From the IMG/VR virus record IMGVR_UViG_3300017963_000188, positions 62,001 to 126,000 of that record: DNA of 64,000 nucleotides. One strand, given 5' to 3'. The notes under the pieces are model-generated. The model ran no database searches and was not told where the DNA came from. It saw only the letters and a program-made list of their open reading frames with translations. Shown here one piece after another: positions 2,325 to 35,941 of this stretch (position 1 is the first letter of the stretch; the number at the start of each line of letters is the position of its first letter). The translations under genes were made by a program, and so were the position numbers.

Positions 2325-3200
2325 ATGCCTAGTCCTGAAATAGCAGAACAAAATAAAGAAATAGCAGAACTTTCAAAACTCACTGGTATCAAACATAATA
2401 CAGGTACTGGTCAGGGAAATGAAGTTCTCTATGTTGATTTTGAAAAACCAGAAAGGATCGGATTCATTGAATTTGGTTTTGATCTCAAAACAGGAGCTTT
2501 TGGTGGTGCCGTGATCTACTACTCAGAAGACAAAGCCTTAGTGATTGAAGACATGCCAGAAGGTGCTTCAACTAAAGAAAAGGCTAGGTGGATTAAGGAT
2601 AAAGTCAACGAATGGACTAGTCAATATTTCGAAGGTTTAAAGTCTTCTTCACAGCTCAGGAAACTGGCTAGAAGCATTATTGGATATCGTATCAAAGACC
2701 TCCCTGACAATGCTTTTGAAGGTCATTACATTGGTTACAAGGGTGAAGATTTCATCAATTTTGATGACACATACCAGTTAGGTCTTGGTCATCCAGCTTT
2801 TGGTGGAGAGCATGAAGAGGATTGGACTGTCAGTGAAGAACTTGAAGAGATTGGAGCTGACACCACTAAACTAAATGCTATCTGGGAAAAACATCTCGGT
2901 AAACTCCATGATGCTTTTATTAAAGATTCTCTATACGATGGGACTACATATCAGGTTGTTCCAAATTTTGATGTATCAGGTTTTGACTATGCTTCACAGG
3001 ATGGTGGGTATTGGGTAGCAAACATTTCTGTTGATTTTGATGCAAAACCAAATCTTGAATCTACTGACATTGACCAAATCACACATCATCTAGATGATGT
3101 GGGATCAAGACTTGTGAGCAGAATGAAAGATTTGGCTACGGAACTTAATAGAGAATTTGACAGGCTTGGTGTGGAATTCAGATCTGAGGTTTGGTCTTAA
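2325..3200 (+). CDS. two-domain hypothetical protein with internal SSQLRKLARSI motif
   Basis: 291-aa ORF, GAGG SD. Confidence 0.8.
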   Translation: MPSPEIAEQNKEIAELSKLTGIKHNTGTGQGNEVLYVDFEKPERIGFIEFGFDLKTGAFGGAVIYYSEDKALVIEDMPEGASTKEKARWIKDKVNEWTSQYFEGLKSSSQLRKLARSIIGYRIKDLPDNAFEGHYIGYKGEDFINFDDTYQLGLGHPAFGGEHEEDWTVSEELEEIGADTTKLNAIWEKHLGKLHDAFIKDSLYDGTTYQVVPNFDVSGFDYASQDGGYWVANISVDFDAKPNLESTDIDQITHHLDDVGSRLVSRMKDLATELNREFDRLGVEFRSEVWS

Positions 3201-3607
3201 TGTATCGTTACGCTGATGAACATGACGATTTCGAGAAGATTTGGGGAGATTGGGATCGTGAACTAAAATCAAGAGGTTTTAGTCTAGCTAAACCCTGGAG
3301 TGGCGAGTGGGAGGTCGAAGGTAGACCTTGGGTGAAGGAACGTGGGAACATCCAGATTTGGGTCTATGTTGTGCCTCAGTGGGATCAGCAAGAAGTCATG
3401 GGTCGTGTGAAGAAACATCATTCAATCTATGGTCACATACAACTAAGACGAGTTCTAGATAGATTTGAACTCAAACCTAGATCACTTAGCAGTCTTCGTA
3501 ATATGAAAAGTAAGGGTCTTGAAAAGGTAGATTACTATCTAGAACAAATGGAAACAGGACTCCCCGATCTTAAAAAGTCCTCTCAGTCTTTTTCTTGGTA
3601 TTTCTGA
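3200..3607 (+). CDS. hypothetical protein with MYRY N-terminus
   Basis: TAATG coupling to upstream gene gives start 3200. Confidence 0.75.
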   Translation: MYRYADEHDDFEKIWGDWDRELKSRGFSLAKPWSGEWEVEGRPWVKERGNIQIWVYVVPQWDQQEVMGRVKKHHSIYGHIQLRRVLDRFELKPRSLSSLRNMKSKGLEKVDYYLEQMETGLPDLKKSSQSFSWYF

Positions 3608-3780
3608 AACACTGTTCTAATATCATTCCCTATAGCTTCCCAGTCACTATGCAGAGCCTCAGCATCTTTCTCCCACCACGGTCTGTTATCTATATTATGG
3701 GAACTGAGGGTGCTACCAAGATCAAGAGTGTGTGCCATTCCTTGCAGAAAGCTTTTCAACATGTTCTTTATATAACGCAT
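3583..3780 (-). CDS. small hypothetical protein
   Basis: 65-aa ORF at end of minus-strand run. Confidence 0.55.
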   Translation of the reverse strand: MRYIKNMLKSFLQGMAHTLDLGSTLSSHNIDNRPWWEKDAEALHSDWEAIGNDIRTVFQKYQEKD

Positions 3781-4057
3781 CTAATCTCTCATTTGCTTTT
3801 CGCATCATTTGGTCTCGTTCATGAGTAGCATCTTCTCTGTAATAGTTTACATCCCATCCACGACTAGTGCAAATCCAGAACTTACCTCCAAATCCAAGTA
3901 GTCCCTGAAATCTCCATTCTGAAACCCCACCCCACAGACAATCATCTTTGATATGATGACTTACAAACATGTCTCTCCACATGTCAGAATCATTTGCACC
4001 ACATTCCTCCACCAACACATCATAAACCTTGTTGGCCATTTCCTTGGTCATTGTCAT
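3722..4057 (-). CDS. hypothetical protein
   Basis: 111 aa, ATGA-coupled; EWRFQGLLGFGGKFW motif. Confidence 0.7.
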   Translation of the reverse strand: MTMTKEMANKVYDVLVEECGANDSDMWRDMFVSHHIKDDCLWGGVSEWRFQGLLGFGGKFWICTSRGWDVNYYREDATHERDQMMRKANERLDALYKEHVEKLSARNGTHS

Positions 4058-4353
4058 GTCACATTCCTTAGTATTTTAACAGGAGTCTTAGAACATATTG
4101 TCCAACCTGGAAGACCTGATTCTACGATCTCTTTTATCGTAGCAAATCTATTATTGGTGTCTACAGGCCAAGGGATGATACCTTCTCTATTTGAATTCTC
4201 ATCCCAAGAGTCTAGATATTCTACTGCTTCTTTCTCTGAAGGGAATGTGCAAGCAGCCGGTTGGCCTACAGAATCAAGTAGTGACCAAAACCCCAATCCC
4301 AAAGCCCCTCCAAGATATACTCCCATCTCTTTATGGTAGAGTACATATCTCAT
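4054..4353 (-). CDS. hypothetical protein
   Basis: 99 aa, coupled to both neighbours. Confidence 0.7.
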   Translation of the reverse strand: MRYVLYHKEMGVYLGGALGLGFWSLLDSVGQPAACTFPSEKEAVEYLDSWDENSNREGIIPWPVDTNNRFATIKEIVESGLPGWTICSKTPVKILRNVT

Positions 4354-4790
4354 GATTCGAGTTCGTTCCTATCCAGTTTGGACATCACTTTGAGGGATGA
4401 TATTATGAAGTTTGTTTCCTCATCTTCTGTTTCTGGCTCAATGATATGACATACTGCTTTTGTATTCTTGATTCTGGTTTGGATGTGTTTTGGAAGTTCT
4501 TTCCATTTCTGACCTTCAAGAGTTGTGAGAAGTTTCAATCCAGTAAGTGGGTATTCTCCTGCAACAAAATCCTTTACGGCACACAAACGTTCAGTCCCCA
4601 TAAGCATTACCATGGGTTCACTCTGACTCATCCTTCTGGCATAAAATGGTGGGAGGGGAATTCTGAGTAAAATGCATTCGATGACTCTGGATCGAATTTG
4701 ATCCAACATGGGAGTCTCATCTGGCAATTTGACATTCTTAATCACAGACCAAACTGTGGTATCTTTACTGGGCATCTTTATATATGGCAT
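4350..4790 (-). CDS. degenerate DUF262 (GmrSD/ParB-like) domain protein
   Basis: SRVIECILLRIPLPPFY and YPLTGLKLL...GQKWKELP; DGxQR replaced by MGTER. Confidence 0.6.
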   Translation of the reverse strand: MPYIKMPSKDTTVWSVIKNVKLPDETPMLDQIRSRVIECILLRIPLPPFYARRMSQSEPMVMLMGTERLCAVKDFVAGEYPLTGLKLLTTLEGQKWKELPKHIQTRIKNTKAVCHIIEPETEDEETNFIISSLKVMSKLDRNELES

Positions 4791-4800
4791 ACATAACTCC

Positions 4801-5073
4801 TTACTTTAGTTTCTTCTTGATCTTACCAAGGTGAGAAACTTTTATGACACTCAACACATAAATTCCATGAGCAAGAACTACTGCTAACCCCTCAAGCTCT
4901 TGGATATCAACCCCTTTCTCTTCTGCTTTCTTCACTGATTTCTTTCCGACATGGTATACAACTTTACCCCCTCGTTGTCGATATGCTTTTCCCCAATCCA
5001 TTGCAAGGAAGATACTCTTAGGATCAACCCCTCGTTGCTGGCACCTCCTTAACGCATGATTTGTCCAAATCAT
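4801..5073 (-). CDS. DUF4258-like protein
   Basis: N-terminal TNHALRRCQQRGV motif. Confidence 0.55.
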   Translation of the reverse strand: MIWTNHALRRCQQRGVDPKSIFLAMDWGKAYRQRGGKVVYHVGKKSVKKAEEKGVDIQELEGLAVVLAHGIYVLSVIKVSHLGKIKKKLK

Positions 5074-5539
5074 TTTTCACCTCCAGGTTCATTTTTAGAC
5101 TTCTCCTCCAAAGTTTACGATCATGTTGGGTCTTGAATATCACGAAATGATTTTCAATATCCCACCATCCAATTATCTCACCATCCCATTCATGTTGAGG
5201 ATGGTAAGAAGACCTAATTTCAGTTCTGTCCTTTGTATGACATTCTTGTGTGTTACCACTATAATGAGATTTAAAGAGATGCTCTGCCACAGAAAACATC
5301 TTTTCAGGACCAAAGAAATAAGCCTTGGCTCCATCATCAGTTGTGATAGGAAGGCTAATTCCTTCTAGATTTTTCATTGCTTTCAGAGCTTTGGGTAGTG
5401 CTCCCCATTCAAATTCAGCACTGCCCATATAATCAAATTCAAAGTATTGATCTACACCCTTTTTACCCTTCTTTGATGACCTTTTTTTGATTCGTTGGAC
5501 AAGAAATGATTTCATTTGACCCTCAATTCTGAACATCAA
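5024..5539 (-). CDS. hypothetical protein
   Basis: 171 aa; FDYMGSAEFEWGALP motif. Confidence 0.7.
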   Translation of the reverse strand: MMFRIEGQMKSFLVQRIKKRSSKKGKKGVDQYFEFDYMGSAEFEWGALPKALKAMKNLEGISLPITTDDGAKAYFFGPEKMFSVAEHLFKSHYSGNTQECHTKDRTEIRSSYHPQHEWDGEIIGWWDIENHFVIFKTQHDRKLWRRSLKMNLEVKNDLDKSCVKEVPATRG

Positions 5540-5981
5540 TTACTTCTGGTTCAACATCAAAAACATCCCTGACGTACTGGATACCTTTTCCTTTCTGCAC
5601 CTCAAATTTCATAGTCATAGGATCTTCAGAAACCGAGGGAGGGAATGGACATGGGCAAGTAGTGTGGATAAAGACTGTATCAGTACCATGACTAATGAGA
5701 ACTGAAATCTTCCTGACTCCAATCAGAAGTTTGAAGCCACGTTTCTCTTTCACCTTCTCATAGACCTTATCCTGAATGTCATGAGGCCACAGATTCTCAG
5801 GCCAACCTGCATCTTCAGGGAAGTCAACAGTGCTGCTATGCATGAAGGTTTCGATGTTGTGCTTACAGATATAGTCAGCCATACCCTCAACATCATTGGC
5901 ATGGAAGGTTGTAGTAGCATCACCATTTTTGAAGAGAAAGACAGGTTCACCATCTTGTAGGTCTATGGTCATAAAGTACAT
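5523..5981 (-). CDS. hypothetical protein
   Basis: 152 aa, GAGGAGG SD. Confidence 0.7.
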   Translation of the reverse strand: MYFMTIDLQDGEPVFLFKNGDATTTFHANDVEGMADYICKHNIETFMHSSTVDFPEDAGWPENLWPHDIQDKVYEKVKEKRGFKLLIGVRKISVLISHGTDTVFIHTTCPCPFPPSVSEDPMTMKFEVQKGKGIQYVRDVFDVEPEVIDVQN

Positions 5982-6016
5982 GAATCCTCCTCAACCTTCA
6001 CAAAAAGGTTCTATTT

Positions 6017-6043
6017 ACTTATACCGAGAGAATCTGTGTTTTT
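6017..6043 (-). promoter_or_regulatory. class A promoter
   Basis: AAAAAC-N11-CGGTATAAGT upstream of 5981. Confidence 0.55.
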
Positions 6044-6231
6044 AAAGTAAAGATTTTTTAAAATGGGTGAGGACCATTTCTAGTTTTTTTCCATCTATAT
6101 CCCGACATAGATTTCCCATATTTAGCATAATAGGTTCGGTCTATTAGATACAGAATGGTATAGGCTTCCTGATCGGAAATGGAGTGTGGTGAAAAGTAAT
6201 GTATAAGGTCAAGGATGGTTTTGATAGATAG

Positions 6232-6510
6232 TCAGCTCAACTTGTCCTTCAAAGTATTGCTGGCCTTGAATGCGATACTCTTACTGGCTTTCACCTTGAT
6301 AGTTTCACCAGTCTTGGGGTTACGAGCCTTACGAGCATTACGTTGTCGAAGTCTGAATGTTCCGAACCCACTTACAGTGAACTTACCATCTTTCACTGTC
6401 TGCTCTGTCAGCAGCTCAAAAGTCTTGTTGAAGATTTCCTCCATGTCTTTCTTGGTCACTTCCAGCCCGGTCTTCTCCAGTAGCTGCTCGACGAATTCCT
6501 TTTTGGTCAT
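6232..6510 (-). CDS. hup: HU family DNA-binding protein
   Basis: MTKKEFVE...GFGTF...RKARNPKTGETIKV...AFKAS; SD GAGG before ATG 6510. Confidence 0.92.
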   Translation of the reverse strand: MTKKEFVEQLLEKTGLEVTKKDMEEIFNKTFELLTEQTVKDGKFTVSGFGTFRLRQRNARKARNPKTGETIKVKASKSIAFKASNTLKDKLS

Positions 6511-6621
6511 TTCTTTCCTCCTTTGTGGTTTCGTCACATCACATAGCTACAACACATAACCATACTACTCTACAAAATGTTTAGAAAAAGTAAAGATATT
6601 TTTTTAATACTGTGAGTAGAT

Positions 6622-6807
6622 ATGAAAGTTCTAGAACACATAGCTATGCTACCCCATCAATGTGATACCTGTGAAGACTCAATCAAAATATTTTCTAAAT
6701 ACTATAAAGTTATCAGTGAGATACGTAATGGTGTGTTCTTTATCTTATGCCCTAAATGTTGGGAAAAGGCTTTAGAAAGTCTATATAAACGTCATCAGAA
6801 GTCTTAA
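6622..6807 (+). CDS. small Cys-rich protein
   Basis: 61 aa, two CxxC. Confidence 0.5.
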   Translation: MKVLEHIAMLPHQCDTCEDSIKIFSKYYKVISEIRNGVFFILCPKCWEKALESLYKRHQKS

Positions 6808-7040
6808 CTTTTTGCCCATGTTTCTGCAAAATGTTGAGCATGGTCATGCAACCCATTCCTCAGATATTCAGAGATTTGACGAGCATCTTTCAATCTCCAT
6901 CGGTTCACTTTTTGATAGCTGATGATCTCTACAGGTTGATCACTGCACTTTGGGCATTTGATTTTATGCCCCCACCATTTGGACAGGAAATAGTGATTGC
7001 AAGAAGAGCAATAGAGTACATGACGTGTATTATCACTCAT
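6804..7040 (-). CDS. zinc-ribbon hypothetical protein
   Basis: 78 aa, two CxxC, GGAG SD. Confidence 0.6.
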   Translation of the reverse strand: MSDNTRHVLYCSSCNHYFLSKWWGHKIKCPKCSDQPVEIISYQKVNRWRLKDARQISEYLRNGLHDHAQHFAETWAKS

Positions 7041-7160
7041 ACCCTCTCCATCGTCTATATTTTATCACTAGCCATTGTAATCCCAAACAAACAGCTAACC
7101 AGATAATCATAATCCAAAAAGGGACTATGATGTAATTGAATAACCATTTTAATGTTTCCA

Positions 7161-7385
7161 TCACTTCTCCAATCGTTCAAACATCTTTTTATATTCTTCC
7201 CTTACCTCCTTTGTGTAAGGCCAACAAGGACCATCTTCTGGGTGGTCTTTTTCCCAGGCACGAGCACATACGGGACATGGTATTTCCCAGTACCCATAAT
7301 CATCAAGCTCACCTCTACCAAAGGTAAGACTATCATCCATAGCTGAAGAGATTCTGCAATCATGATGTCCGCATTTGCTCATCAT
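7161..7385 (-). CDS. small hypothetical protein
   Basis: 74 aa, Cys/His-rich. Confidence 0.6.
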   Translation of the reverse strand: MMSKCGHHDCRISSAMDDSLTFGRGELDDYGYWEIPCPVCARAWEKDHPEDGPCWPYTKEVREEYKKMFERLEK

Positions 7386-7440
7386 ATATCTCCTTACACT
7401 TGGGACAGCAATGACTCAAATGATCGTGGGCAACGATACA

Positions 7441-7755
7441 TTATTCCTCCCACTCTAGAAGAACCCAAACCGCACCATCTACAACTCGACTGGAATAGTC
7501 AAAAAACTGCTCTGAACCTCTTTCTCTGATTATCCAGTCATGCATCCGATCTTCCATGAACGCATTGCGAAGATGCATGGGATTATATGGGAGTATTGGT
7601 GGTGTATCTGGATCAGTCTCTGTATAAAGTGTCCATATCCGAAGAGGCCATGTCTCAAATGGGTAAGGCACTAGTGGAACTTTGTTCACCATCCCACCTT
7701 GATCTTCACCAGGGGGCATCCACATCAGTTCTTGTCGCATCACAACCTCCTCCAT
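7441..7755 (-). CDS. hypothetical protein
   Basis: 104-aa ORF. Confidence 0.55.
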   Translation of the reverse strand: MEEVVMRQELMWMPPGEDQGGMVNKVPLVPYPFETWPLRIWTLYTETDPDTPPILPYNPMHLRNAFMEDRMHDWIIRERGSEQFFDYSSRVVDGAVWVLLEWEE

Positions 7756-7766
7756 GATCTATACCG

Positions 7767-8376: not shown

Positions 8377-8477
8377 GGCAAACCTCCATAGTTCTATACT
8401 CTAAGTATACACTATACTTATCATCTAATCTAGAACTTTGGTTAAGATTTGCAATAATTTTTTTTAATTAGCTGAGA

Positions 8478-8765
8478 TTATTCAGAAATCTGTACCCAAC
8501 TTTCCCCCTTTTCAAGCCTCCATTTCTCACCATCTTTCTCCAAAGTGACGGTATCAGGACTCAAAAGGTTAGGTGGTTCAAGACCATTACAGAATTCTAG
8601 AAATACTCCTGGGACAATTTCTTGAGTTCCTTCTGGACAGGTGACAAGTTCTCCCAGCATCTTTTCTGCTGTTTCCATTGCCTCTTCCACCCCAAGGGAC
8701 TCTTTGATCTTCACCGACTCTGTTATCTTAGCAGCCAGTTTCCTTAAATGCTCTGATGGTTTCAT
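8478..8765 (-). CDS. hypothetical protein with SEHLRKLAAKI leader
   Basis: 95 aa, GAGGTG SD. Confidence 0.7.
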   Translation of the reverse strand: MKPSEHLRKLAAKITESVKIKESLGVEEAMETAEKMLGELVTCPEGTQEIVPGVFLEFCNGLEPPNLLSPDTVTLEKDGEKWRLEKGESWVQISE

Positions 8766-8859
8766 TAGTCACCTCTCATTTCTATTATACTCAAGATACA
8801 AAATTTTTATCTACAAATTTCTGGTTTTGTCCGGTATATATGGTTTGAGGAGGTGTGAC

Positions 8860-10293
8860 ATGTGGTTTGACGTAGATAAAGATGGGCTGTCAAAGTTGCT
8901 TGCCAAACGGGGTAAAGAGTTCGTCCTGTTTGAACTGATCCAAAATGCCTGGGATACTGACACCAAAGAAGTATACATTTATCTCAAGAAGCTTACAGGT
9001 AGACCTCTAGCAGAACTTGAGGTTGAAGATGAAGACCCTGAAGGTTTTGCAGACTTGGCTCACAGCTACACCTTATTTGCTGAGAGTCTGAAGAAAGGAG
9101 ACCCTTCTAAAAGAGGTCGATTCAATCTGGGTGAGAAGCTCGTTTTGGCTCTCTGCAAATCAGCAGAAGTGTCAAGCACCAAAGGGACAGTCATCTTTCT
9201 AGAAGACGGAACTCGGAAACGATCTCGTCGTAAGTTGGAAGCTGGTAGTATTTTCAAAGCCCAAATCAAAATGACTCAAGAGGAGTATGAGAAGGTCTGT
9301 GAAGAGGTCCAGAAGCTCATCCCTCCCCCAGGTATCAAGACTCATTTTAATGGTCATATGTTGGAACGTCGTAAGCCTGTGACCACTTTCCAAGCCCCTC
9401 TACAGACCGTGAAATCAGATGATGAAGGGAACCTGACCAGGACGGTCAGGAAATGTGATGTATCTGTCTATGAACCAAAGGAAGGTGAGGTAGCCCATAT
9501 ATACGAAATGGGCATTCCTGTAGTTGAAACGGGAGACTTCTATCATATCGATGTTGGACAGAAAGTCCCATTAAACATGGACCGTGATAATGTGCCCCCT
9601 TCATTCCGTAAAACCCTCAGAACTTTGGTGCTGAATGAGACCTACAATCTTGTTCCTGAAGAAGAGGCTTCCAAGCCTTGGGTCAATGAAGCTTTAGAAC
9701 ATGAACAAGTGAGTAAGGAAGCTGTAAACACCACTCTCACCAAACGGTTTGGAGAGAAACGAGCCATTTACGACATGAAAGACAAGGAGGCTAATAACCG
9801 TCTCACTTCTGAAGGTTACCAGGTTATGTATGGTGGTTCCTTCTCTAAACCAGCATGGGAAAATATCAAGAAGCATGAAGCTGCTCTTCCATCTGGTGTG
9901 ATTCGGCCCACTCCCAAACCTTACGGTGATGGTCCCGATACAGTAGAGATTATCCCAGAGCACAAATGGACTCCAGGGATGAAACGAGTTGTGAAGCTGG
10001 CAAAAGAACTAGCCATGTCTCTAATGGAAGTTGAGCTAACAGTCAGGATCGTTAGAGCTAAGAATAGTTTTGGAGCCTGTTACGGTGATGACCGTCTTGA
10101 TCTAAATCTTGATGCTCTGGGGCATCGTTGGTTTAACAGCTATAATCTAGAGGAAATTCTAGATTTATTGATCCATGAATTTGGGCATCATTACGAAAGT
10201 AATCATCTGAGTGATAGATATTACAATGCCTTATCCAGCCTTGCTGCTCAGCTAGCCGTCCTGGCTCTAGAATGCCCAGATCTCTTTGATTGA
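8860..10293 (+). CDS. GHKL (HSP90-like) ATPase with C-terminal HExxH motif
   Basis: ELIQNAWD (N box), EDEDPEG, RGRFNLGEK; LLIHEFGHH; start at ATG 8860 after GAGGAGG. Confidence 0.75.
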   Translation: MWFDVDKDGLSKLLAKRGKEFVLFELIQNAWDTDTKEVYIYLKKLTGRPLAELEVEDEDPEGFADLAHSYTLFAESLKKGDPSKRGRFNLGEKLVLALCKSAEVSSTKGTVIFLEDGTRKRSRRKLEAGSIFKAQIKMTQEEYEKVCEEVQKLIPPPGIKTHFNGHMLERRKPVTTFQAPLQTVKSDDEGNLTRTVRKCDVSVYEPKEGEVAHIYEMGIPVVETGDFYHIDVGQKVPLNMDRDNVPPSFRKTLRTLVLNETYNLVPEEEASKPWVNEALEHEQVSKEAVNTTLTKRFGEKRAIYDMKDKEANNRLTSEGYQVMYGGSFSKPAWENIKKHEAALPSGVIRPTPKPYGDGPDTVEIIPEHKWTPGMKRVVKLAKELAMSLMEVELTVRIVRAKNSFGACYGDDRLDLNLDALGHRWFNSYNLEEILDLLIHEFGHHYESNHLSDRYYNALSSLAAQLAVLALECPDLFD

Positions 10294-10352: not shown

Positions 10353-10766
10353 ATGTTAAGTAAAGAACTGAAAAAGATTGCAAAGAACATTAATAACCCC
10401 CCGAAGACTTCTGCCTTCATGGAGCCTGAAATCATCTTGGATGATTGGGTTTCTGTCGATGGTCCTATGGGTGGGGAGTCTACCCCTGCTGAATATATAG
10501 ATCTTGATGAAGTAGCTGAACTTCAGAAAGAGATTGATGAAAAGGGTGAAGTCTCTCTGGAAGGAACTTCATTGAATGACTACTTCGAGAACCGTTCAGC
10601 CTATGAGATTGAAGTCTCCAAGGGATATGGTGCTCGTCTTTCAGCTCCTGGATATATGGATGCCACAGGTTGGTCTGTTTTTGACACTGAGGCAGAGGCC
10701 CGAGAATATCTGATGGAGACATATGACCTAGATGAAAATCTTGAAGAGATTGAAGAAGATTGGTAG
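10353..10766 (+). CDS. acidic hypothetical protein with SKELKKIAKNI leader
   Basis: 137 aa; GARLSAPGYMDATGW motif. Confidence 0.75.
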   Translation: MLSKELKKIAKNINNPPKTSAFMEPEIILDDWVSVDGPMGGESTPAEYIDLDEVAELQKEIDEKGEVSLEGTSLNDYFENRSAYEIEVSKGYGARLSAPGYMDATGWSVFDTEAEAREYLMETYDLDENLEEIEEDW

Positions 10767-12228: not shown

Positions 12229-12231
12229 AAT

Positions 12232-17140: not shown

Positions 17141-17270
17141 CTTCCTCAGACATAGCTACAGTTTTGCCTGTTTTCAAATTTACATAATGAGAACCTATTA
17201 CGGACCATCCATCATCATCTATTTTATATTCTCCTTCAAGCATCTTGTTCTTTCCGATGTTGAAACACAA
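17052..17270 (-). CDS. small hypothetical protein
   Basis: 72-aa ORF between cca and methyltransferase; start uncertain. Confidence 0.4.
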   Translation of the reverse strand: MCFNIGKNKMLEGEYKIDDDGWSVIGSHYVNLKTGKTVAMSEEDEETDGDSQARQDLLPDDTCNSRREGGEL

Positions 17271-18594
17271 TCTGCATCAGAGCTTCCATGTTGTTGTCTT
17301 CTGGCACATCCAGGACATGCTCCATCAAAGCATTCAACACTACACCCACTTGAGGACCAGGCTTGACACCCAGAGCCTGCATCACATCATGCCCATCCAC
17401 AGCCAAGTTACGTGGACTATTGGGGGTGAAGTCTTTTTGCTCATCACATCGTTTCTTGAAGGTCACGAAATCTTCGTGGTCCTTCTCAGACATCCCAGCA
17501 GAACGACTCCCAGCTTTGTCTGCAAAGCTCAAGATGAAAAAGTCTTTCAGACGTTCTTTCCCAATCTTGTTGATAAACCTTCTCACACCAGGATCTTTCA
17601 TCCTCCTGTTGCTTTGATCTGCCATATGGTGAAACACCAAATGCTTTACGAATTCTCGTTCTTCATTGGAGAACTTCATTCGACGCATGAAGTCTTCAGT
17701 GATACGAGCTGATTCTTTTTGATGATCTATGAATGCAAATTCACCTCGACGTTCGTCAAATTCCCTGACCACAGGCTTTCCAATATCATGTAGGAAAGCA
17801 GCCAGACGGATCAAGGGCCTATCAGCAGGGACATTCTTGATCACTGCTACGGTATGTCCCCACACATCAAAGTCATGGTAATGGTTCTGCTTGCAATCAA
17901 ACATAGCCTCTGCTTCTGGGCAGAAGTGTTCAAACAGACCACAGATTCTCAACTGTCTTAGGCCAGTTTCCACATGTTCTGAAGACAGAATCTTCATGAA
18001 CTCATCCCTGATTCGTTCTGGTGATACCTTAGTCAAGACCTTTGAACAGTCCTTCATTGCTTGCAAAGTAAATGGTTCGATCTGAAATCCTAACCGAGAT
18101 GCAAATCTGATTGCTCTCATCACTCTCAGACCGTCTTCCAAAAACCGATCCTTAGCTTTCCCTACTGCTTGGATCAACCCTGCCTTCAGGTCTTTCTCTC
18201 CACCAAAAGGATCTACCAAGACATCATCAATAGGATCAAAAGCCATTGCATTGATAGTGAAGTCACGACGGCTCAGGTCCTCATTAATGTCACTGATAAA
18301 ATCCACAGAATCAGGACGACGACCATCACTGTAGTTTCCATCACCCCTTAGGGTAGTGGCTTCAAAACCCTCACCATCAATCATGACTGTAACGGTACCA
18401 TACTCGATTCCCGTGGGTACAACTTTGGGGAACATGGCTACTACTTGATCTGGAAGAGCAGAAGTACAGATGTCCCAGTCTTTTGGATCTAGACCTAGAA
18501 TTGCATCTCGAACAGACCCACCTACGATGTGGGCAGAGAAGCCTTTTTCCTTCAGGCTCTTGATGATTTCTACAACTGGCTCTGGAACTCTCAT
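17236..18594 (-). CDS. cca: CCA tRNA nucleotidyltransferase with HD domain
   Basis: VGGSVRD, DWD, DLSRRDFTINAMA, EDGLRVMRAIRF, FLHDIGK. Confidence 0.93.
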   Translation of the reverse strand: MRVPEPVVEIIKSLKEKGFSAHIVGGSVRDAILGLDPKDWDICTSALPDQVVAMFPKVVPTGIEYGTVTVMIDGEGFEATTLRGDGNYSDGRRPDSVDFISDINEDLSRRDFTINAMAFDPIDDVLVDPFGGEKDLKAGLIQAVGKAKDRFLEDGLRVMRAIRFASRLGFQIEPFTLQAMKDCSKVLTKVSPERIRDEFMKILSSEHVETGLRQLRICGLFEHFCPEAEAMFDCKQNHYHDFDVWGHTVAVIKNVPADRPLIRLAAFLHDIGKPVVREFDERRGEFAFIDHQKESARITEDFMRRMKFSNEEREFVKHLVFHHMADQSNRRMKDPGVRRFINKIGKERLKDFFILSFADKAGSRSAGMSEKDHEDFVTFKKRCDEQKDFTPNSPRNLAVDGHDVMQALGVKPGPQVGVVLNALMEHVLDVPEDNNMEALMQIVFQHRKEQDA

Positions 18595-29793: not shown

Positions 29794-29795
29794 TT

Positions 29796-30224: not shown

Positions 30225-30240
30225 AATAGCTCCTTTATGT

Positions 30241-30326
30241 TGGTGGGTGAGGAGGGACTCGAACCCTCAAGCCCGAAGGCACAGGAACCTAAATCCTGCG
30301 TGTCTACCAAGTTCCACCACTCACCC
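30241..30326 (-). tRNA. trnL: tRNA-Leu(UAG)
   Basis: cloverleaf, loop TTTAGGT, long variable arm, CCA. Confidence 0.95.
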
Positions 30327-30373
30327 AGCTTGCATCTCACCCAGCTTGCATCTCATCCAGCTTGCATCTCACC
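30320..30373. repeat. 16-bp tandem repeat (3.4 copies) overlapping tRNA-Leu 5' end
   Basis: CTCACCCAGCTTGCAT at 30320, 30336, 30352 (1 mismatch), partial 30368. Confidence 0.9.
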
Positions 30374-30531
30374 ACATCTGCCCGTTTCTTTGCAGCCTCT
30401 CTTTTTGCTTTTTCCTCTGCTTCTTTTTTCCTAACCATCTCCTTATGAGCATCACTTTCAAGATGGTCCTTAAGAGCTGATTCTCTCTTGAAACGTCTCA
30501 TACAAAGACTGCAAACAAACTTTGGAGGCAT
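30337..30531 (-). CDS. C2H2 zinc-finger small protein
   Basis: FVCSLCMRRF...LKDHLESDAH. Confidence 0.7.
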   Translation of the reverse strand: MPPKFVCSLCMRRFKRESALKDHLESDAHKEMVRKKEAEEKAKREAAKKRADVVRCKLDEMQAG

Positions 30532-30556
30532 CTTATCTCCTTCCTATGTTCTAAGG

Positions 30557-30583
30557 TTGTATACTGGACAGATTTGAATTTTT
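30557..30583 (-). promoter_or_regulatory. class A promoter
   Basis: AAAAAT-N11-CAGTATACAA. Confidence 0.55.
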
Positions 30584-30605
30584 GAAGGGATTTTTTGAAA
30601 GGTCA

Positions 30606-31433
30606 TTAGTCGATCCAGCTAACACCTTCCATTCGACCTTGATTGGATTCAGTGTTAGCAATGACTTTACGCCATTGTCTGATCTTAAGGGTTTTATGGT
30701 CCACATGCCTGATATTGCCCCTGACAAACACTTCTGGACGCTGACGCATGGGAAAGCCGTGACTCAAGGGGGTCCCTCCAAGCACTACCAGTTCCTCAGC
30801 AATGTGAGGGTTTCCACCAGCACGACCCGCATGGGCTCCAATGCTTTCCTTACGTTTCATCAGACCCATTTCCACAGCCTTTTCGATTTCTTTCTTCTCA
30901 GTATCTGTGGTGTTGAGGAAGAACCACTCCCCTTGCCTGAAGGTCCTCCCTTTTTGCTTCCCTTCTGCTGTCCATACAGTGGGGGCTTTGAGGCAGTTGT
31001 GTGCATCCCTGACCGTACTCACAGCTTTGGGGAGCTGAGCAATGAAGAGCTGTCGTTCATCCACTCCCATCAAGAAATGACGTTTGTTTTCTGGGGTGTA
31101 TTCCCGAACAACCCAATGCTTTTTGGTTTCCCGGATCGTATTCTTGGGTCTATCAGGGATACGAGACTTGTAGATCAGAGTCTCAAAGGGCCTACGTTTT
31201 TCATGGACCATCAACACAAGTTGACCCTTCTCTGCATCAGTACCCTGGACCAAGACCCGATTGGAATCATGGCCAGGATAAATCCTGAAGATTTCGGTAC
31301 GACGATTGCCCTTGATACGACGGTCAATATCCATACCGAAAACATCCTCTCCACCCGTACCACGAGTGAAAGGAGTGTTGGTAACTTCCACTTTGAGTCC
31401 TGCTCTCTCGAAACCTTTGACCAAATTTTCCAT
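30606..31433 (-). CDS. hypothetical protein (RQGEWFF motif)
   Basis: 275 aa; visibly higher GC than flanks. Confidence 0.8.
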   Translation of the reverse strand: MENLVKGFERAGLKVEVTNTPFTRGTGGEDVFGMDIDRRIKGNRRTEIFRIYPGHDSNRVLVQGTDAEKGQLVLMVHEKRRPFETLIYKSRIPDRPKNTIRETKKHWVVREYTPENKRHFLMGVDERQLFIAQLPKAVSTVRDAHNCLKAPTVWTAEGKQKGRTFRQGEWFFLNTTDTEKKEIEKAVEMGLMKRKESIGAHAGRAGGNPHIAEELVVLGGTPLSHGFPMRQRPEVFVRGNIRHVDHKTLKIRQWRKVIANTESNQGRMEGVSWID

Positions 31434-31494
31434 GGTACCATCTCCATTCTAGAAGTAACCACTCTAGAATTATACCAAGGGGTTATTTTTTTGG

Positions 31495-33450
31495 TTATTG
31501 ATCTAGAACAGACCTGATCTTTTTTGAGATTTCACTGAGACTGAAAGGCTTTTGAATAAATCCATCACAACCTTTTTCCAACACATATGAAGCTTTCCCA
31601 TTGATGTTGTATCCACTCATCAAGACAACTTTCACTTTTGGGTTTATCTTCTTCAGAGTGTCATATATCTCTGGACCCCCAATTCCTGGCAGCACCATAT
31701 CTAACAATATCAAGTCGATACTGTCTTGATGGTTCTTATAGAAATCAATAGCTTTTAAACCATCTTTTTCAGGATAAACCGTATATCCTATAGTACTGAG
31801 AAGTCTAGTAGCTGTTTTTATGATAATATCTTCATCATCTATCAACAATATACATTCTGATCCTATCTCTAACTGATCATCCTCTATTTTATTTTCAAAT
31901 AAGATCTCTTCAGCTCTGGGGAGATACACATTTACGGTAGTCCCTTCTCCTTCAACACTATGTAGAGAAATATCCCCCTCATGATTTTTGATGATACCAT
32001 ATGCTGAAGATAAGCCAAGACCAGAACCACGTCCTACTTCTTTGGTTGTGTAGAACGGATCAAAGGCTCGTTCTATTGTTTTATTACTCATCCCACACCC
32101 AGTATCTGTCACAGATAACTTGATATAATCACCAGGTTTTAAATGAAGAGATCCTATTTCAGATACTGATATATTTGAAGTAGTAATATAAAGATCACCT
32201 CCTGTTGGCATAGCTTGACTAGCATTGACAAACAGGTTCATAAGAACTTGTTCTATCTGGCCGGGATCTGCACTGACACTCCAAATATCACTCTTCAGAC
32301 TTTTATGCACAACAATATCTTTCCTAGTTCTGCTAAATATACCAATGCTATTGTTGACTAATACATTTATGTTTGAGGTTATGATATTTGAGGTGTCTAT
32401 GCCACGACGGGCAAAGCTAAGAAGTTGTGCAGTCAGATCAGCAGCTCTCTTACCACAAATCTCTATATCTATAAGTTCTTGGCTAGTCTTCCCTTCTTTC
32501 AAACGAAGTAAAGTAGCATTTGATAGTATACCCATCAAAAGGTTGTTGAAATCATGTGCTATTCCACCAGCCAAGGTTCCAATAGCTTCCATTTTCTGAG
32601 CATGGTAAAATTGAGTTTCAAGAGCTTTTCGATCTGTGATGTCCTCTCCATAACCAATACTATATTTTATATTACCCTCGTGATCATACAACACTGAATT
32701 GTGCCAAGCTATGAGTCTTTCTTCTCCAGTCTTTGTCAGTACAGGATTTTCATAGTATTCAGATAATTGTATTTCACCATTTATCAGATTATTAAAGACT
32801 TGTTTTACTTGAGGCACATATCTTTTTGGTAAGAAGTTTTCAAACCAGTTTTTACCAATTATATGCCTACAATCATCAGAATTATAACCTAATATCTGAC
32901 ATCCTTTCTTGTTTATAAGAGCAACATTTTGATTAGAATCAATTGTTACAAAAATCACATTAGCTACATTAAGGAACTCTTTCACTGTATTTTTTTCCAT
33001 CTTTAATTCTTTTTCTACTTCATATTGTTTAGTCACATCTACGATCTGTATTATTAGACCACCTTTAAAAAATGATGTGTGAAAAGAAGCTACTTTCTCA
33101 GCACCATCTTTACACGTTATTCTGAATACAGTGCAATCCTGTCCCTCACCCTTAAGAGCTTGTGTCACATTTTTCCAAACAAAATCTCTATATTCTCCAT
33201 CAGGATATAACCTTTCTACCCATTCTCCTACATTTTTGATTTCATCAGTAGTGTACCCAATGAATTTCTCTAGAGCTTTATTGAAAAGTACAATAGAACC
33301 ATCCGACCGTCCTATAGCCGTTGGTATTGGACTTTGAAGCACAATTAACGGAAAGCATAATTCAGAGTCTAGGATATCAACATCATATTCTGGAGATCCC
33401 CTAATATCTGCTAGAGCTTTCGCTTCTTTGTCCGACATTCCTTTGATCAT
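31495..33450 (-). CDS. PAS-PAS hybrid sensor histidine kinase/response regulator
   Basis: two PAS; AHDFNN H box, N/G1/F/G2 boxes; receiver LLIDDE...LLDMVLP...KPF. Confidence 0.95.
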   Translation of the reverse strand: MIKGMSDKEAKALADIRGSPEYDVDILDSELCFPLIVLQSPIPTAIGRSDGSIVLFNKALEKFIGYTTDEIKNVGEWVERLYPDGEYRDFVWKNVTQALKGEGQDCTVFRITCKDGAEKVASFHTSFFKGGLIIQIVDVTKQYEVEKELKMEKNTVKEFLNVANVIFVTIDSNQNVALINKKGCQILGYNSDDCRHIIGKNWFENFLPKRYVPQVKQVFNNLINGEIQLSEYYENPVLTKTGEERLIAWHNSVLYDHEGNIKYSIGYGEDITDRKALETQFYHAQKMEAIGTLAGGIAHDFNNLLMGILSNATLLRLKEGKTSQELIDIEICGKRAADLTAQLLSFARRGIDTSNIITSNINVLVNNSIGIFSRTRKDIVVHKSLKSDIWSVSADPGQIEQVLMNLFVNASQAMPTGGDLYITTSNISVSEIGSLHLKPGDYIKLSVTDTGCGMSNKTIERAFDPFYTTKEVGRGSGLGLSSAYGIIKNHEGDISLHSVEGEGTTVNVYLPRAEEILFENKIEDDQLEIGSECILLIDDEDIIIKTATRLLSTIGYTVYPEKDGLKAIDFYKNHQDSIDLILLDMVLPGIGGPEIYDTLKKINPKVKVVLMSGYNINGKASYVLEKGCDGFIQKPFSLSEISKKIRSVLDQ

Positions 33451-33514
33451 AAGAGCCCCTGATCTTTTTCGTACTATACAACTTATTTTTAGATTATATA
33501 ATAAAATAATTGAT

Positions 33515-33602
33515 TGGTGCCGGGGGAGGGAATCGAACCCTCACGAGATTTCTCTCATCGGATTTTGAATCCGACGTGTCTACCTAGTTCCACCACCCCG
33601 GC
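33515..33602 (-). tRNA. trnL: tRNA-Leu(CAA)
   Basis: stem TCGGA/TCCGA, loop TTCAAAA, CCA. Confidence 0.95.
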
Positions 33603-33606
33603 TATA

Positions 33607-33692
33607 TGGTGCTGGAGGAGGGATTTGAACCCTCAATCCCTTACGGGCATAGCGTCCTGAACGCTACGTGTATACCGTTCCACCACTCCAGC
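33607..33692 (-). tRNA. trnL: tRNA-Leu(CAG)
   Basis: loop TTCAGGA, CCA. Confidence 0.95.
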
Positions 33693-33700
33693 AAATTGTT

Positions 33701-33788
33701 TGGTGCCGGAAGAGGGAATCGAACCCCCACGGGACAAGTCCCACTAGGACCTAAACCTAGCGTGTCTGCCTAGTTCCACCATTCCGGC
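33701..33788 (-). tRNA. trnL: tRNA-Leu(UAG)
   Basis: loop TTTAGGT, CCA. Confidence 0.95.
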
Positions 33789-33789
33789 C

Positions 33790-33875
33790 TGGTGTCTGGG
33801 GAGGGGATCGAACCCTCAAGCCTTTCGGCACAGCGACCTCAACGCTGCGTGTCTACCTAATTTCACCACCCAGAC
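33790..33875 (-). tRNA. trnL: tRNA-Leu(GAG)
   Basis: loop TTGAGGT, CCA. Confidence 0.95.
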
Positions 33876-33877
33876 TT

Positions 33878-33962
33878 TGGTGCTCAGGGAGGGATTCGAA
33901 CCCTCAAGCCTTTCGGCACAGGATTCTTAGTCCTGCGTGTATACCAGTTCCACCACCCGAGC
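33878..33962 (-). tRNA. trnL: tRNA-Leu(AAG)
   Basis: stem CAGGA/TCCTG, loop CTAAGAA, CCA. Confidence 0.93.
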
Positions 33963-33969
33963 ATATTTT

Positions 33970-34056
33970 TGGTGCTGGGGGAGGGAATCGAACCCTCACG
34001 ACACAAGGCCAGGGGATTTTAAGTCCCCAGTGTCTACCTAATTCCACCACCCCAGC
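33970..34056 (-). tRNA. trnL: tRNA-Leu(UAA)
   Basis: loop CTTAAAA, CCA. Confidence 0.95.
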
Positions 34057-34076
34057 ACAACACCTAAAATTTCAAA

Positions 34077-34244
34077 GATCAAACCTATCCCCTGCACACA
34101 GTACAGTAGTCTAGATCTGTACTGTGAGGATTATTAAATTACAAGAGTAACAGGGAAAGGGATAGATCGGTGGAAACGATTTCGGTTTTGGCAACGATGT
34201 CAATTCCCGTTTTCATCTCTCACCTCACCGTGTCGATTCACGGT
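34077..34244 (-). ncRNA. candidate structured leader/ncRNA upstream of Leu array
   Basis: nested stems 34085-91/34159-65 and 34097-106/34117-126; hairpin 34227-44; class-A-like promoter near 34250. Confidence 0.4.
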
Positions 34245-34297
34245 ACACTTAATATACAGTAGAGAAATCTTTTTGGCTAGTCTTTTTTTGATCTAGG

Positions 34298-35224
34298 CTA
34301 AAAAATACTTCCGTCTTCATTAAATTCATATTCATTGACCATGATATTTTCATCTACATTCTCATCAGCCATCAACCAATCATATTCTTTTTCAAGAGCT
34401 TGGTAGTAATCTTGAGCATAGTATCGAGCTTGTTCAAGACCCCATTCATTGAGTTCTTCTACTTCTCTTTCAAGAGCCTCATCAAACTTGTCTACTTCAT
34501 CTTCTGACCAGTCATCAGCATCTTCATAATTATCTACAGATGGAGCACGGATGTCGTCACCGTGCATTGTATTTGAATGATAGTAATGCCCAGAATGAGT
34601 GATGTTGAGGTGATAATCCTCATAGTCTTCACCACCCATTTCTTCCATGAGCTTTACAAAAGAAGGGAATTGCTTTTCAGCACCTTCACTATGAATGAGC
34701 TTGAGAAGGTCTACAGAACCTTCCCAGCTTGCACCGTCACCCTGACTAGCAAAACCAGAAAAGTACATCTTGTCAATGTCAAAACCCTTTTTCTCACCAT
34801 CTTCCTTGAACTGCTCTTCAAGAAAATCCCACCACTCGTAATCAAGGGCTCCATCACGCCACCATTCACGAGCCTTATCTTTAGCTTGATCGTCAAGTTC
34901 GTCAAACTTGTAGACCTCTTTTTCAACGGTTCTTGGGAGAGCTACTTTTCTTTGTGACTGATATCTATACATGTTCGACCTCTTTGCTGCCTTGTTGAAA
35001 TACTTTACTGCCTCATCTTCTTTCTTGAAGTAATGACCCCAATAGAAACCATTGCCTTTAGACCATCTCCAGACACCCCAAGGTGATGCTGAAGAGTCAG
35101 AAAAACCTAAGGCATACCATTCCTGACCATCCTTACGTTTCACATTCCTGATATCGTATGCTCCAGCACTGGTTTCCATTCCTGGGGGTAACTGCACTCC
35201 TGCTGCTTTTTTATATCTATACAT
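34298..35224 (-). CDS. two-module hypothetical protein, each module beginning MYRY
   Basis: 308 aa; second module VYKFDELDDQAKDKAREW...NEYEFNEDG; internal SD+ATG at 34972. Confidence 0.85.
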   Translation of the reverse strand: MYRYKKAAGVQLPPGMETSAGAYDIRNVKRKDGQEWYALGFSDSSASPWGVWRWSKGNGFYWGHYFKKEDEAVKYFNKAAKRSNMYRYQSQRKVALPRTVEKEVYKFDELDDQAKDKAREWWRDGALDYEWWDFLEEQFKEDGEKKGFDIDKMYFSGFASQGDGASWEGSVDLLKLIHSEGAEKQFPSFVKLMEEMGGEDYEDYHLNITHSGHYYHSNTMHGDDIRAPSVDNYEDADDWSEDEVDKFDEALEREVEELNEWGLEQARYYAQDYYQALEKEYDWLMADENVDENIMVNEYEFNEDGSIF

Positions 35225-35233
35225 TTCAATCTC

Positions 35234-35590
35234 CTAGAAAGCACCTGGTTGAAACCAATTTCCAAAATCATGCTTATCAGTGACTTTAAGATGATCTCCC
35301 TCACTTACCTTAGGGAGCTTTTTACGAAGCCTGATACTCTTCATCTCTGACCTTTTACGAGCATTCTGCATCACAATATCAGCTTCTTCTTGATTATCCA
35401 CAGCAATAGCTATATAGCTTCGACCAGGAGCTTTACCCCACCCACTCATAAAGCTGTCGATCATGATGACGTAATTCCAAGGTTGGGTCTTTTTCTTACG
35501 AACATCTTCAATTTCCTGTCCTCTGATTGATCTCCAGGCAACATTCTCTGCTATTTTACTGAAATCCATGATATGTCTCCTATGTACCAA
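35234..35590 (-). CDS. hypothetical protein (FSKIAENVAWRSI leader)
   Basis: 118 aa; MIDSFMSGWG motif. Confidence 0.75.
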   Translation of the reverse strand: MVHRRHIMDFSKIAENVAWRSIRGQEIEDVRKKKTQPWNYVIMIDSFMSGWGKAPGRSYIAIAVDNQEEADIVMQNARKRSEMKSIRLRKKLPKVSEGDHLKVTDKHDFGNWFQPGAF

Positions 35591-35609
35591 ACAATCTACT
35601 CTAGATAGA

Positions 35610-35626
35610 TTATAAATGATTTATAA
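35610..35626. promoter_or_regulatory. palindromic class B site between divergent genes
   Basis: TTATAAAT-G-ATTTATAA. Confidence 0.5.
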
Positions 35627-35650
35627 TTATATCAAATAAGGAGATATGTC

Positions 35651-35941
35651 ATGCAAATCAGTGCTCAATTAAGAAGACTAGCCAAAGAAATATATCAAGT
35701 GCGGTTAAGCCAAGATCTGATAGATCGTTTAGAAGATTGGGTTTTTGGAACCACAGGTTATGTATCTATAATTTTCAATAATTCTAGAAATTACAAAGAC
35801 GTACCTCTGCAATTAGTTCTAGATACAATATCTGAACTTGAGGGGCCTCTTTATCTAAAGAGCCCCACCCTATCTCTATACGAAAAAGATGAGATAAAAG
35901 ATTTGATCCGTCGATTGAAGAGCTATGTACCTATGCAGTAG
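35651..35941 (+). CDS. hypothetical protein with SAQLRRLAKEI leader
   Basis: 96 aa, AAGGAG SD. Confidence 0.7.
   Translation: MQISAQLRRLAKEIYQVRLSQDLIDRLEDWVFGTTGYVSIIFNNSRNYKDVPLQLVLDTISELEGPLYLKSPTLSLYEKDEIKDLIRRLKSYVPMQ

Follow-up and report, generated by a model that had tools for sequence, protein, structure and literature searches.

An 11-residue N-terminal tag shared by otherwise unrelated small proteins of an uncultured huge bacteriophage

Occurrence of Tag I in the window and in the genome

The window analyzed here is a 64,000-nucleotide stretch (positions 62,001 to 126,000) of the IMG/VR record IMGVR_UViG_3300017963_000188, which belongs to a huge phage with a genome of 358,038 bp. 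A plasmid or cellular origin, first suggested by a histidine kinase and a CCA-adding enzyme, was rejected since the record encodes a terminase, a portal, a capsid protein, a protease, and tail fibers. The peptide S-x-x-L-[RK]-[RK]-[LI]-A-x-x-I, designated Tag I, occurs at four places in the window. SSQLRKLARSI (2646 to 2678, + strand) is internal, occupying residues 108 to 118 of a 291-amino-acid (aa) ORF (2325 to 3200), between an extra 106-aa N-terminal module and the conserved C-terminal cargo. SEHLRKLAAKI (8724 to 8756, - strand) occupies residues 4 to 14 of a 95-aa ORF (8478 to 8765), and its ortholog in the related contig L029 keeps the tag as MKLSTKLRKLSSQI. SKELKKIAKNI (10359 to 10391, + strand) occupies residues 3 to 13 of a 137-aa ORF (10353 to 10766), in which tag and linker (residues 1 to 20) precede a widespread acidic cargo domain. 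SAQLRRLAKEI (35660 to 35692, + strand) occupies residues 4 to 14 of a 96-aa ORF (35651 to 35941). All four sites listed in an earlier note are thus confirmed, although the positions 8765, 10353, and 35651 given there are ORF starts rather than motif starts. The weaker case in that note, FSKIAENV (35540 to 35563, - strand), directly follows an SD-preceded ATG at 35569 (MDFSKIAENV; ORF 35234 to 35569). It resembles the short forms MNPIRKMAERVAK (protein P0002) and LRKIAENM but on its own is not statistically separable from noise.

A second recurrent N-terminal motif, MYRY, opens three ORFs: one at 3200 to 3607 (+ strand), directly downstream of the 291-aa Tag I protein; a 308-aa ORF at 34298 to 35224 (- strand; MYRYKKAAG...); and a 111-aa ORF at 39808 to 40143 (- strand; MYRYNDNRSPRRARK...). 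The adjacency of Tag I genes and MYRY genes was not significant (permutation P = 0.16).

The occurrence of Tag I is far beyond chance. The per-position probability calculated from the proteome composition is 4.2e-8, which gives 0.005 expected hits in the gene set of ~112,000 residues and 0.03 in six frames of the whole genome. In total, seven hits were observed, and 0 of 500 per-protein shuffles gave any hit. Three of the seven lie outside the window, where about 0.025 are expected, and they provide an out-of-sample check of a pattern that was defined from the window. A PSSM and an HMM separated nine strong sites (16 to 22 bits) from everything else, with the best reversed-sequence decoy scoring 6.2 bits. 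Seven of the nine strong sites begin 2 to 4 residues after the start codon. The codons for the conserved residues differ between copies (Ser is TCA, AGT, AGC, or TCT; Leu is TTG, TTA, CTC, or CTG; and Arg and Lys codons vary), so selection acts on the peptide and a DNA repeat or regulatory cassette is rejected.

Tag I as an add-on to unrelated cargos

As proposed in the earlier note, the tag is a basic amphipathic helix, with a net charge of 0 to +4, a hydrophobic moment of 0.57 to 0.92, and an L/L-A/I stripe. The conserved Ser is inferred to sit at the helix N-cap position. These properties could suggest a membrane-targeting helix that brings accessory proteins to the host inner membrane, like the short, terminal, basic amphipathic sequences of MinD, FtsA, and MreB. 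However, this reading is very doubtful because the mean hydrophobicity is negative (-0.10 to -0.58), there are only three large hydrophobic residues and no aromatics, and position-specific conservation of Ser, Leu, and Ala is not expected for lipid binding.

Consistent with the claim of the note that the rest of each protein is unrelated, all-versus-all BLASTP found similarity only in the 12- to 16-residue tag, and the tagged proteins gave no Pfam or PHROG hits. The 117-aa tagged protein is an ORFan, and a fold search of the 137-aa cargo in PDB and AFDB clusters returned no meaningful match. A scan of JGI metagenomes for orthologs of the 95-aa protein found only the source contig. A degenerate DNA scan of IMG/VR for an SD, an ATG, and the tag gave 23 hits, which is about the chance level; only the second contig of the phage itself and one lone hit looked tag-like, and the record of the latter holds no further copies.

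Several observations of homologs and predicted structures reveal that the tag is an add-on. In a search that returned 105 proteins, including the query, nearly all relatives of the 137-aa cargo start with M[AS]FMEP, which is residue 21 of the query, indicating that the helix is gained independently of the cargo. In the AF2 model of this protein, the pLDDT is 56 to 62 for residues 1 to 20 and above 90 for residues 21 to 125, so the helix is not part of the predicted cargo fold. The note described the copy at 2646 to 2678 as linking two domains, which is confirmed; it is an N-terminal tag that acquired an extra upstream module, since the closest homolog (P0107; 52% identity over residues 107 to 283), in a syntenic contig, starts with MTSSILRRLAKNI directly after the syntenic upstream gene. 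The AF2 model of the 291-aa protein itself was too poor to use beyond secondary structure (mean pLDDT of 55). The alternative that the tag is merely the slowly evolving first helix of one fast-diverging paralogous family is very unlikely. Although the genes are small, clustered, and fast-evolving, and several are ORFans, one cargo belongs to a large family that lacks the tag, a tag-bearing protein of a relative (G006, below) carries DUF7007, and cargo lengths, charges, and predicted folds differ.

Tag classes in related phages and the head module

The earlier note underestimated the scope of the motif, which is one of several N-terminal tag classes in a whole clade of huge phages. Relatives with major capsid proteins 80 to 93% identical (424 IMG/VR loci) carry five recurrent classes (Y, V, N, W, and L) on 4 to 8% of their genes. 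In two relatives, G006 and G002 (major capsid protein about 83% identical), each class is far above shuffled expectation; in G006, the observed counts are 12, 11, 10, 6, and 7 against shuffled means of 0.2, 0.03, 0, 0.26, and 0.01. Class L aligns with Tag I, with the Leu invariant and the Ala present in at least 90%. The tags are exchangeable, since the same downstream segment, AKKKVPPEFLEQQKKMKEK, follows a class W tag in one gene and a class V tag in another. However, the nearest GenBank huge phage, LR745208 (major capsid protein 79% identical), shows no Tag I copies, and its one C-terminal hit, THELRRIAKRI, is within the chance expectation.

In G006, 10 of the 18 genes around protease-scaffold-capsid are tagged. 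Eight of them, including one of class L, form a same-strand run with gaps of 6 to 29 nucleotides downstream of the capsid gene, from which they are separated by a 764-aa methyltransferase-like gene and one short opposite-strand ORF. In G002, 4 of 11 genes are tagged. Binomial estimates for the two relatives are about 2e-7 and about 5e-4, respectively. This placement is not general, because in the 4-kb flanks downstream of the capsid gene in 64 other relatives only 14 of 224 ORFs are tagged, which is about the genome-wide rate. In the genome studied here, no Tag I gene lies near the head module. The Tag I genes sit in the small-ORF and tRNA-rich accessory region (genome positions 327 to 358 kb plus 0 to 98 kb), on both strands, many with their own promoter-like sequences. 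Two promoter-like motif types were seen, but they do not cleanly separate structural genes from tagged genes.

The core pattern L[RK][RK][LIV]A..[IM] hits exactly 11 places in six frames of the genome, of which nine are the strong tags and one is a near-N-terminal copy. The eleventh is in the head maturation protease (NDNLRRVASRI, residues ~286 to 296), just after its catalytic domain. This position is a clade-conserved helix, [DN]P..[ML].[KR]AA[RS], in 42 relatives and takes the Tag I form in this phage and its nearest relatives, L060 and L061. It should be noted that the protease hit is a single post hoc observation.

Possible roles of the tag

Tag I is interpreted as a short, autonomous docking helix that this phage and its relatives attach, usually at the N terminus, to unrelated small proteins. 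Its most likely role, proposed tentatively, is a prohead or capsid-targeting signal. The helix would bind a component of the assembling head (the scaffold or core, the prohead protease, or the luminal face of the HK97-type major capsid protein), and the tagged proteins would then be enclosed and later delivered with the DNA. Binding, encapsidation, and ejection are inferred. The cargos fit ejected proteins, one being protamine-like and basic (pI 10.7) and several being very acidic (pI 4.1 to 4.7). In addition, the scaffold-like protein beside the protease is extremely acidic, which would suit a basic helix.

A precedent is the capsid targeting sequence (CTS) of phage T4, a 10- to 20-residue N-terminal peptide shared by the diverse internal proteins (IPI-III and Alt), which places them in the scaffolding core; the T4 cargos include anti-defense proteins delivered with the DNA (PMC3012670, PMC5694885). 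However, Tag I shows no sequence similarity to the T4 CTS, which is probably MKTYQEFIAE-like, and no conserved residue or cleavage motif follows the tag in 17 aligned copies, whereas T4 CTSs end at a protease site, although the specificity of the protease of this clade is unknown. At least five tag classes exist in the clade, rather than one, and the tag tolerates internal positions in two cases; in G006, it sits behind a 28-residue extra helix. The head genes are also of a different lineage. The capsid protein is of the short HK97 type rather than gp23, matching phrog_2522 and weakly PF05065, with Tunturi_5, phage G, and Myrna as its nearest cultured relatives. A PF03420 search of the genome for a gp21-type protease (Peptidase_S77) found nothing, although its control gave no hit either.

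Other terminal targeting peptides were also compared. Encapsulin cargo-loading peptides are short conserved terminal peptides on diverse cargos that dock on the luminal face of an HK97-fold shell protein, and the shell protein here is also HK97-like and unusually conserved, but encapsulin peptides tend to be C-terminal and extended rather than helical and basic. A complex prediction with the capsid protein, scaffold, and a tagged protein gave no answer, which neither supports nor refutes docking. N-terminal regions of the phage P1 Dar anti-restriction proteins and the phiKZ and SPN3US head proteins direct accessory or ejection proteins into large phage heads, and the conserved N termini of SPN3US gp53 and gp54 are described as CTS-like (PMC5694885). 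However, those signals are long (30 to more than 100 residues) and specific to a protein or a paralog. Bacterial microcompartment (BMC) encapsulation peptides are terminal amphipathic helices of about 11 to 18 residues joined by a linker to unrelated cargos, but the tag here is basic with conserved residues at fixed positions, the context is a tailed phage, and no PF00936 shell protein match was found in the genome, whereas the control genomes gave matches.

An alternative, which is possible but less likely, is that Tag I docks to a hub outside the virion, such as the phage-encoded Cpn60-family chaperonin, an unfoldase or protease adaptor, RNA polymerase, or the ribosome. A basic amphipathic helix with a nearly invariant small residue is typical of groove binding, and the accessory-region location of the Tag I genes, their promoter-like sequences, and the tolerance of internal placement are consistent with this. 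However, no candidate partner was identified, five tag classes would need several hubs, and neither the enrichment of tagged genes in the head operons of G006 and G002 nor the Tag I-form helix in the prohead protease would be explained. It is improbable that Tag I is a degron or protease-recognition element that times the lifetime of accessory proteins or marks them as substrates of the head maturation protease. N-terminal degrons may occur in bacteria, and the sequence in the protease could be an autoprocessing or pseudo-substrate site. However, the motif is helix-forming with a conserved N-cap and a hydrophobic stripe rather than an extended cleavage motif, the internal copies are conserved in orthologs, and no resemblance to ClpX, ClpS, or Lon recognition motifs is apparent, although without a formal comparison.

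A more speculative possibility, considered unlikely, is that the clade runs a peptide "postcode" system, in which each tag class is read by a different receptor and dozens of accessory proteins are sorted to different destinations or into different loading and ejection waves, such as distinct layers of the head interior or virion versus cell, with tags shuffled between cargos as modules. Such a virus-encoded multisignal sorting code would have no described counterpart in phages. While short N-terminal targeting peptides are already known from T4, the multiclass tag system itself appears undescribed.

If the tag is a head-loading signal, it gives a sequence-only way to list the proteins that uncultured huge phages carry into the cell with their DNA, which are likely first-strike anti-defense and takeover factors otherwise invisible among ORFans. 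It would also give a portable 11-residue handle for packaging foreign proteins into large capsids. Whatever the mechanism, 3 to 8% of genes in a widespread clade carry one of a few short N-terminal motifs that are swapped between cargos, which is an unrecognized organizing principle of these genomes and makes the role of the small ORFs of huge phages a testable question.

Genomic context and occurrence of the motif

The window occupies bases 62,001-126,000 of a single contig with a length of 358,038 bp and a G+C content of 40.6%. The contig is classified as a virus record with a CheckV completeness of 100%, and its source is a JGI metagenome scaffold. Two IMG/VR contigs carry an identical terminase gene and so appear to be the same phage. 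The phage is a tailed huge phage, with genes encoding tail-fibre proteins, a large terminase, a portal, a head maturation protease, a very acidic scaffold-like protein and a short HK97-type major capsid protein (MCP). A Cpn60/GroEL-type chaperonin (PHROG E 3e-142, Pfam 2e-63) is encoded at genome 176183-177751 (-), next to the portal and terminase genes. The window alone contains 28 tRNA genes (window 30241-63801) in arrays grouped by amino acid, including seven tRNA-Leu and four tRNA-Ser genes. A CCA-adding enzyme is encoded at window 17236-18594 (-), and a phage-encoded hybrid sensor histidine kinase with PAS domains, HisKA, HATPase and a receiver domain is found at window 31495-33450 (-).

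The strict pattern S..L[RK][RK][LI]A..I occurs at four places in the window, 2646-2678 (+), 8724-8756 (-), 10359-10391 (+) and 35660-35692 (+), which confirms the four sites reported in the earlier note, although for three of them the note gave the ORF starts instead of the motif coordinates. In the whole genome the strict pattern hits seven times, and slightly relaxed patterns add two more, with N-terminal MLSQHLRRLARKI, MLSNDLRKIAKRI, MVSNELRKIAENM and MRVSNELRRVAAGI and internal SSALRKIAQDI in a 332-aa protein. From amino acid composition, 0.005 hits are expected in the gene set and 0.03 in all six frames, and none of 500 per-protein shuffles produced a hit. The three strict hits outside the window are an independent check, because the pattern was defined from the window. 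A PSSM and an HMM separate nine strong sites from the rest, with the best reversed-sequence decoy scoring 6.2 bits against 15.9-22.4 bits for the nine sites, although those nine are also the training set. Weaker candidates are MFRLAANFKTVSYLRRLAKKI (9.8 bits), a C-terminal ...SSGLRGIAKRIWAK (7.1 bits), MSSIELRKLSFKI, MKDSDQLRIISAKI and MDFSKIAENV, which the earlier note had also listed as a weaker case. Seven of the nine strong sites begin 2-4 residues after an SD-preceded ATG. Synonymous codons vary freely between copies, so the conserved object is the peptide. All copies of this tag (Tag I) lie in genome 327-358 kb plus 0-98 kb, the region of small ORFs and tRNAs, and none lies among the large structural and replication genes, except for a site in the protease.

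Modularity and physical character of the tag

All-vs-all BLASTP of the carriers finds only the 12-16-residue tag, and none of the carriers has a Pfam or PHROG family. A homology search with the 137-aa protein (window 10353-10766) returned 105 proteins, the query among them, and nearly all relatives begin M[AS]FMEPQ..., which is residue 21 of the window protein. MLSKELKKIAKNINNPPKTS is therefore an N-terminal extension. The closest homologue, P0002 (67% identical), carries a shorter variant, MNPIRKMAERVAKTA, and the same 12.9-kb contig has the ortholog of the 95-aa window protein with the tag kept as MKLSTKLRKLSSQI. An AF2 model of the 137-aa protein built on 46 sequences gives pLDDT above 90 for residues 21-125 and 56-62 for residues 1-20, which indicates that the helix is not part of the cargo fold, with the caveat that the alignment is nearly empty over the tag. 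The predicted cargo fold has no match in PDB or AFDB clusters. A 550-aa ORF with weak GHKL/sacsin-like ATPase matches (window 8641-10293, +) sits between two divergently placed Tag I genes and is absent from the syntenic related contig L029, which instead carries two PAPS-reductase-like genes.

Two copies are internal. The copy in the 291-aa protein, which the earlier note described as linking two domains, has a single homologue (P0107), which aligns with residues 107-283 and starts MTSSILRRLAKNI directly after the syntenic upstream gene. The window protein has therefore gained a 106-aa N-terminal module in front of an ancestrally N-terminal tag. A related contig carries a peroxiredoxin (AhpC-like) gene (L033:891-1481) immediately downstream of P0107. 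The second internal copy (genome 18050) follows a widespread ~80-aa N-terminal domain and is conserved in a fragmentary ortholog as SAELRWVAKNI. That the tag is merely a paralog remnant or an artefact is considered very unlikely.

The net charge of the tag is 0 to +4, the hydrophobic moment is 0.57-0.92, and the mean hydrophobicity is negative. The conserved Ser, often followed by an acidic or amide residue, sits where a helix N-cap would be, and L, L/I-A and I then form an i, i+3/4, i+7 stripe, as read from the alignment. This fits a three-turn helix that docks into a protein groove better than it fits a lipid-binding helix, and membrane targeting is considered improbable. A docking helix for a hub outside the virion, for which the phage chaperonin is one candidate, remains possible but doubtful.

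Recurrent N-terminal tag classes in related huge phages

The MCP has 424 relatives in IMG/VR at about 80-93% identity, on contigs of up to 448 kb and with GC contents of 40-55%. They represent a large clade of huge phages whose other genes are much more diverged, with the protease, for example, being 38-58% identical and the scaffold and accessory genes also diverging strongly. The unusual conservation of the MCP may reflect many binding constraints on the shell protein. Two of these genomes, G002 (400 of 416 kb) and G006 (398 kb, complete), were retrieved, and the first 22 residues of all predicted proteins were compared within each. Five recurrent N-terminal motif classes emerged on proteins of different length and sequence. 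Class Y, M(x)YSYD[RH]R, was observed 12 times in G006 against a shuffled mean of 0.2, and 9 times in G002. Class V, ..[AS]ERV[VA].R[YF], was observed 11 times in G006 (shuffled mean, 0.03) and 8 times in G002, and class N, M(S)NPRKAFEEA[LI], 10 times in G006 (shuffled mean, 0) and 4 times in G002. Class W, MD..RWK.A, was observed 6 times in G006 (shuffled mean, 0.26) and twice in G002, and class L, MEKIANPQELA.EL..L...(5)PSR..LAS.L..LA..[VIL], 7 times in G006 (shuffled mean, 0.01) and 0 times in G002. In total, 46 of 586 predicted genes are tagged in G006 (for example, at 298380-302828) and 23 of 612 in G002.

Tag I aligns with the second helix of class L. In 17 sequences from three phage lineages, the Leu is invariant and the Ala is present in at least 90%. 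Class-L cargos in G006 also differ from each other, with one carrying DUF7007. The phage under study has classes L (Tag I) and Y. Class Y appears here as MYRY, usually followed by basic residues, which opens 10 otherwise dissimilar proteins against 0.14 in shuffles, again with varied codons. These are found at window 3200-3607 (+), 34298-35224 (-) and 39808-40143 (-), and at genome 17549, 27148, 27669, 37320, 42125, 43293 and 44950. One protein (genome 17549-18547) has both MYRY at its N terminus and an internal Tag I. Sequences that may be class-V-like N termini, MSFESIVSRVVHR, MDLISRVIERSKK, MDIVSRVIQRYLR, MDIIDKVAERV and MDLRQITERVAKR, lie at genome 40714 (+), 108709 (-) (window 46709), 122667 (+) (window 60667), 45043 (+) and 344320 (+), but they were not captured by the class-V pattern. 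The exact class-N pattern occurs in all of IMG/VR only in G006 (5 copies) and G003 (2 copies), with no chance hits. The tags are therefore clade-specific. They are also exchangeable, since the segment AKKKVPPEFLEQQKKMKEK follows a class-W tag in one G006 gene and a class-V tag in another, and a near-identical LPPEFLEQQKKMKEK follows a class-V tag in G002. A further shared segment, VPPEFLEQQKKMKEK, follows different tags.

Possible link to head assembly

The head operon of G006 consists of two MTYDRRY genes (class Y), the protease, the scaffold, a 212-aa gene, the MCP and a 764-aa methyltransferase-like gene, followed by eight tagged genes in a row (W, Y, V, L, Y, W, V, W) on the same strand with 6-29-nt gaps and then by further conserved virion genes. 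Ten of the 18 genes there are tagged, against 7.8% genome-wide (binomial estimate, about 2e-7). In G002, three class-V genes follow the MCP and one class-Y gene precedes the protease, which amounts to 4 of 11 genes against 3.8% genome-wide (about 5e-4). However, placement in the head operon is not general across the clade, since only 14 of 224 downstream ORFs in 64 relatives are tagged. In the genome under study, the Tag I genes are dispersed in the accessory region, often with their own promoter-like sequences. One promoter-like motif, TCTGAAAAGTCTCAGTATAGAAT, lies about 26 nt before the ATG of many genes (e.g., genome 38281, 103715, 104433, 321111 and 322355), and a second type, TTTTTATTT...TATAGA, lies upstream of several tagged genes and some structural genes, but timing classes could not be assigned.

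The core pattern L[RK][RK][LIV]A..[IM] has exactly 11 hits in six frames of this genome. Ten are tags, and the eleventh is NDNLRRVASRI in the head maturation protease (genome 211503-213008), just after the catalytic domain and before a poly-acidic stretch and a ~200-aa extension. The neighboring 365-aa protein is extremely acidic, with PMPEGEAAPA repeats, and looks like a scaffold. The protease position is a conserved helix, [DN]P..[ML].[KR]AA[RS], in 42 relatives, and it takes the Tag I form in this phage and its closest relatives, with TSELKKIASVF in L061 and KKGIQRVASRL in L060. The huge phage LR745208, which has no Tag I copies, has SDAYLKAAHQT there. A protease that must itself be built into the prohead, carrying the same docking helix as the small tagged proteins, is what a shared head-targeting signal would predict, although this remains a single post hoc observation. 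A turnover or protease-recognition signal is an unlikely alternative.

The best-supported model, which is put forward tentatively, is a capsid- or prohead-targeting peptide that works like the T4 CTS. The CTS is 10-20 residues long, and SPN3US head proteins show CTS-like conserved N termini (PMC5694885). The cargos here fit proteins packed with DNA and ejected, with one being protamine-like and several being very acidic and possibly DNA-mimic-like. Against this model, internal placement of the tag is tolerated, and no conserved cleavage site was seen after it in the aligned sequences. A complex prediction with the MCP, the scaffold and a tagged protein gave no answer and is not evidence either way.

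On this model the system resembles the T4 CTS and, more loosely, encapsulin cargo-loading peptides or P1 Dar packaging signals, but it does not appear to be a member of those families. There appears to be no sequence similarity to the T4 CTS, and the head-gene lineage is different, with the MCP being nearest to those of Tunturi_5 (46%), phage G (38%) and Myrna-type phages. No BMC shell gene is present. Literature searches found no description of shared short N-terminal motifs in this clade. Although targeting peptides of this general type are already known, the multiclass, swappable tag repertoire on 3-8% of genes appears to be the genuinely new observation, and it could amount to a sorting code.
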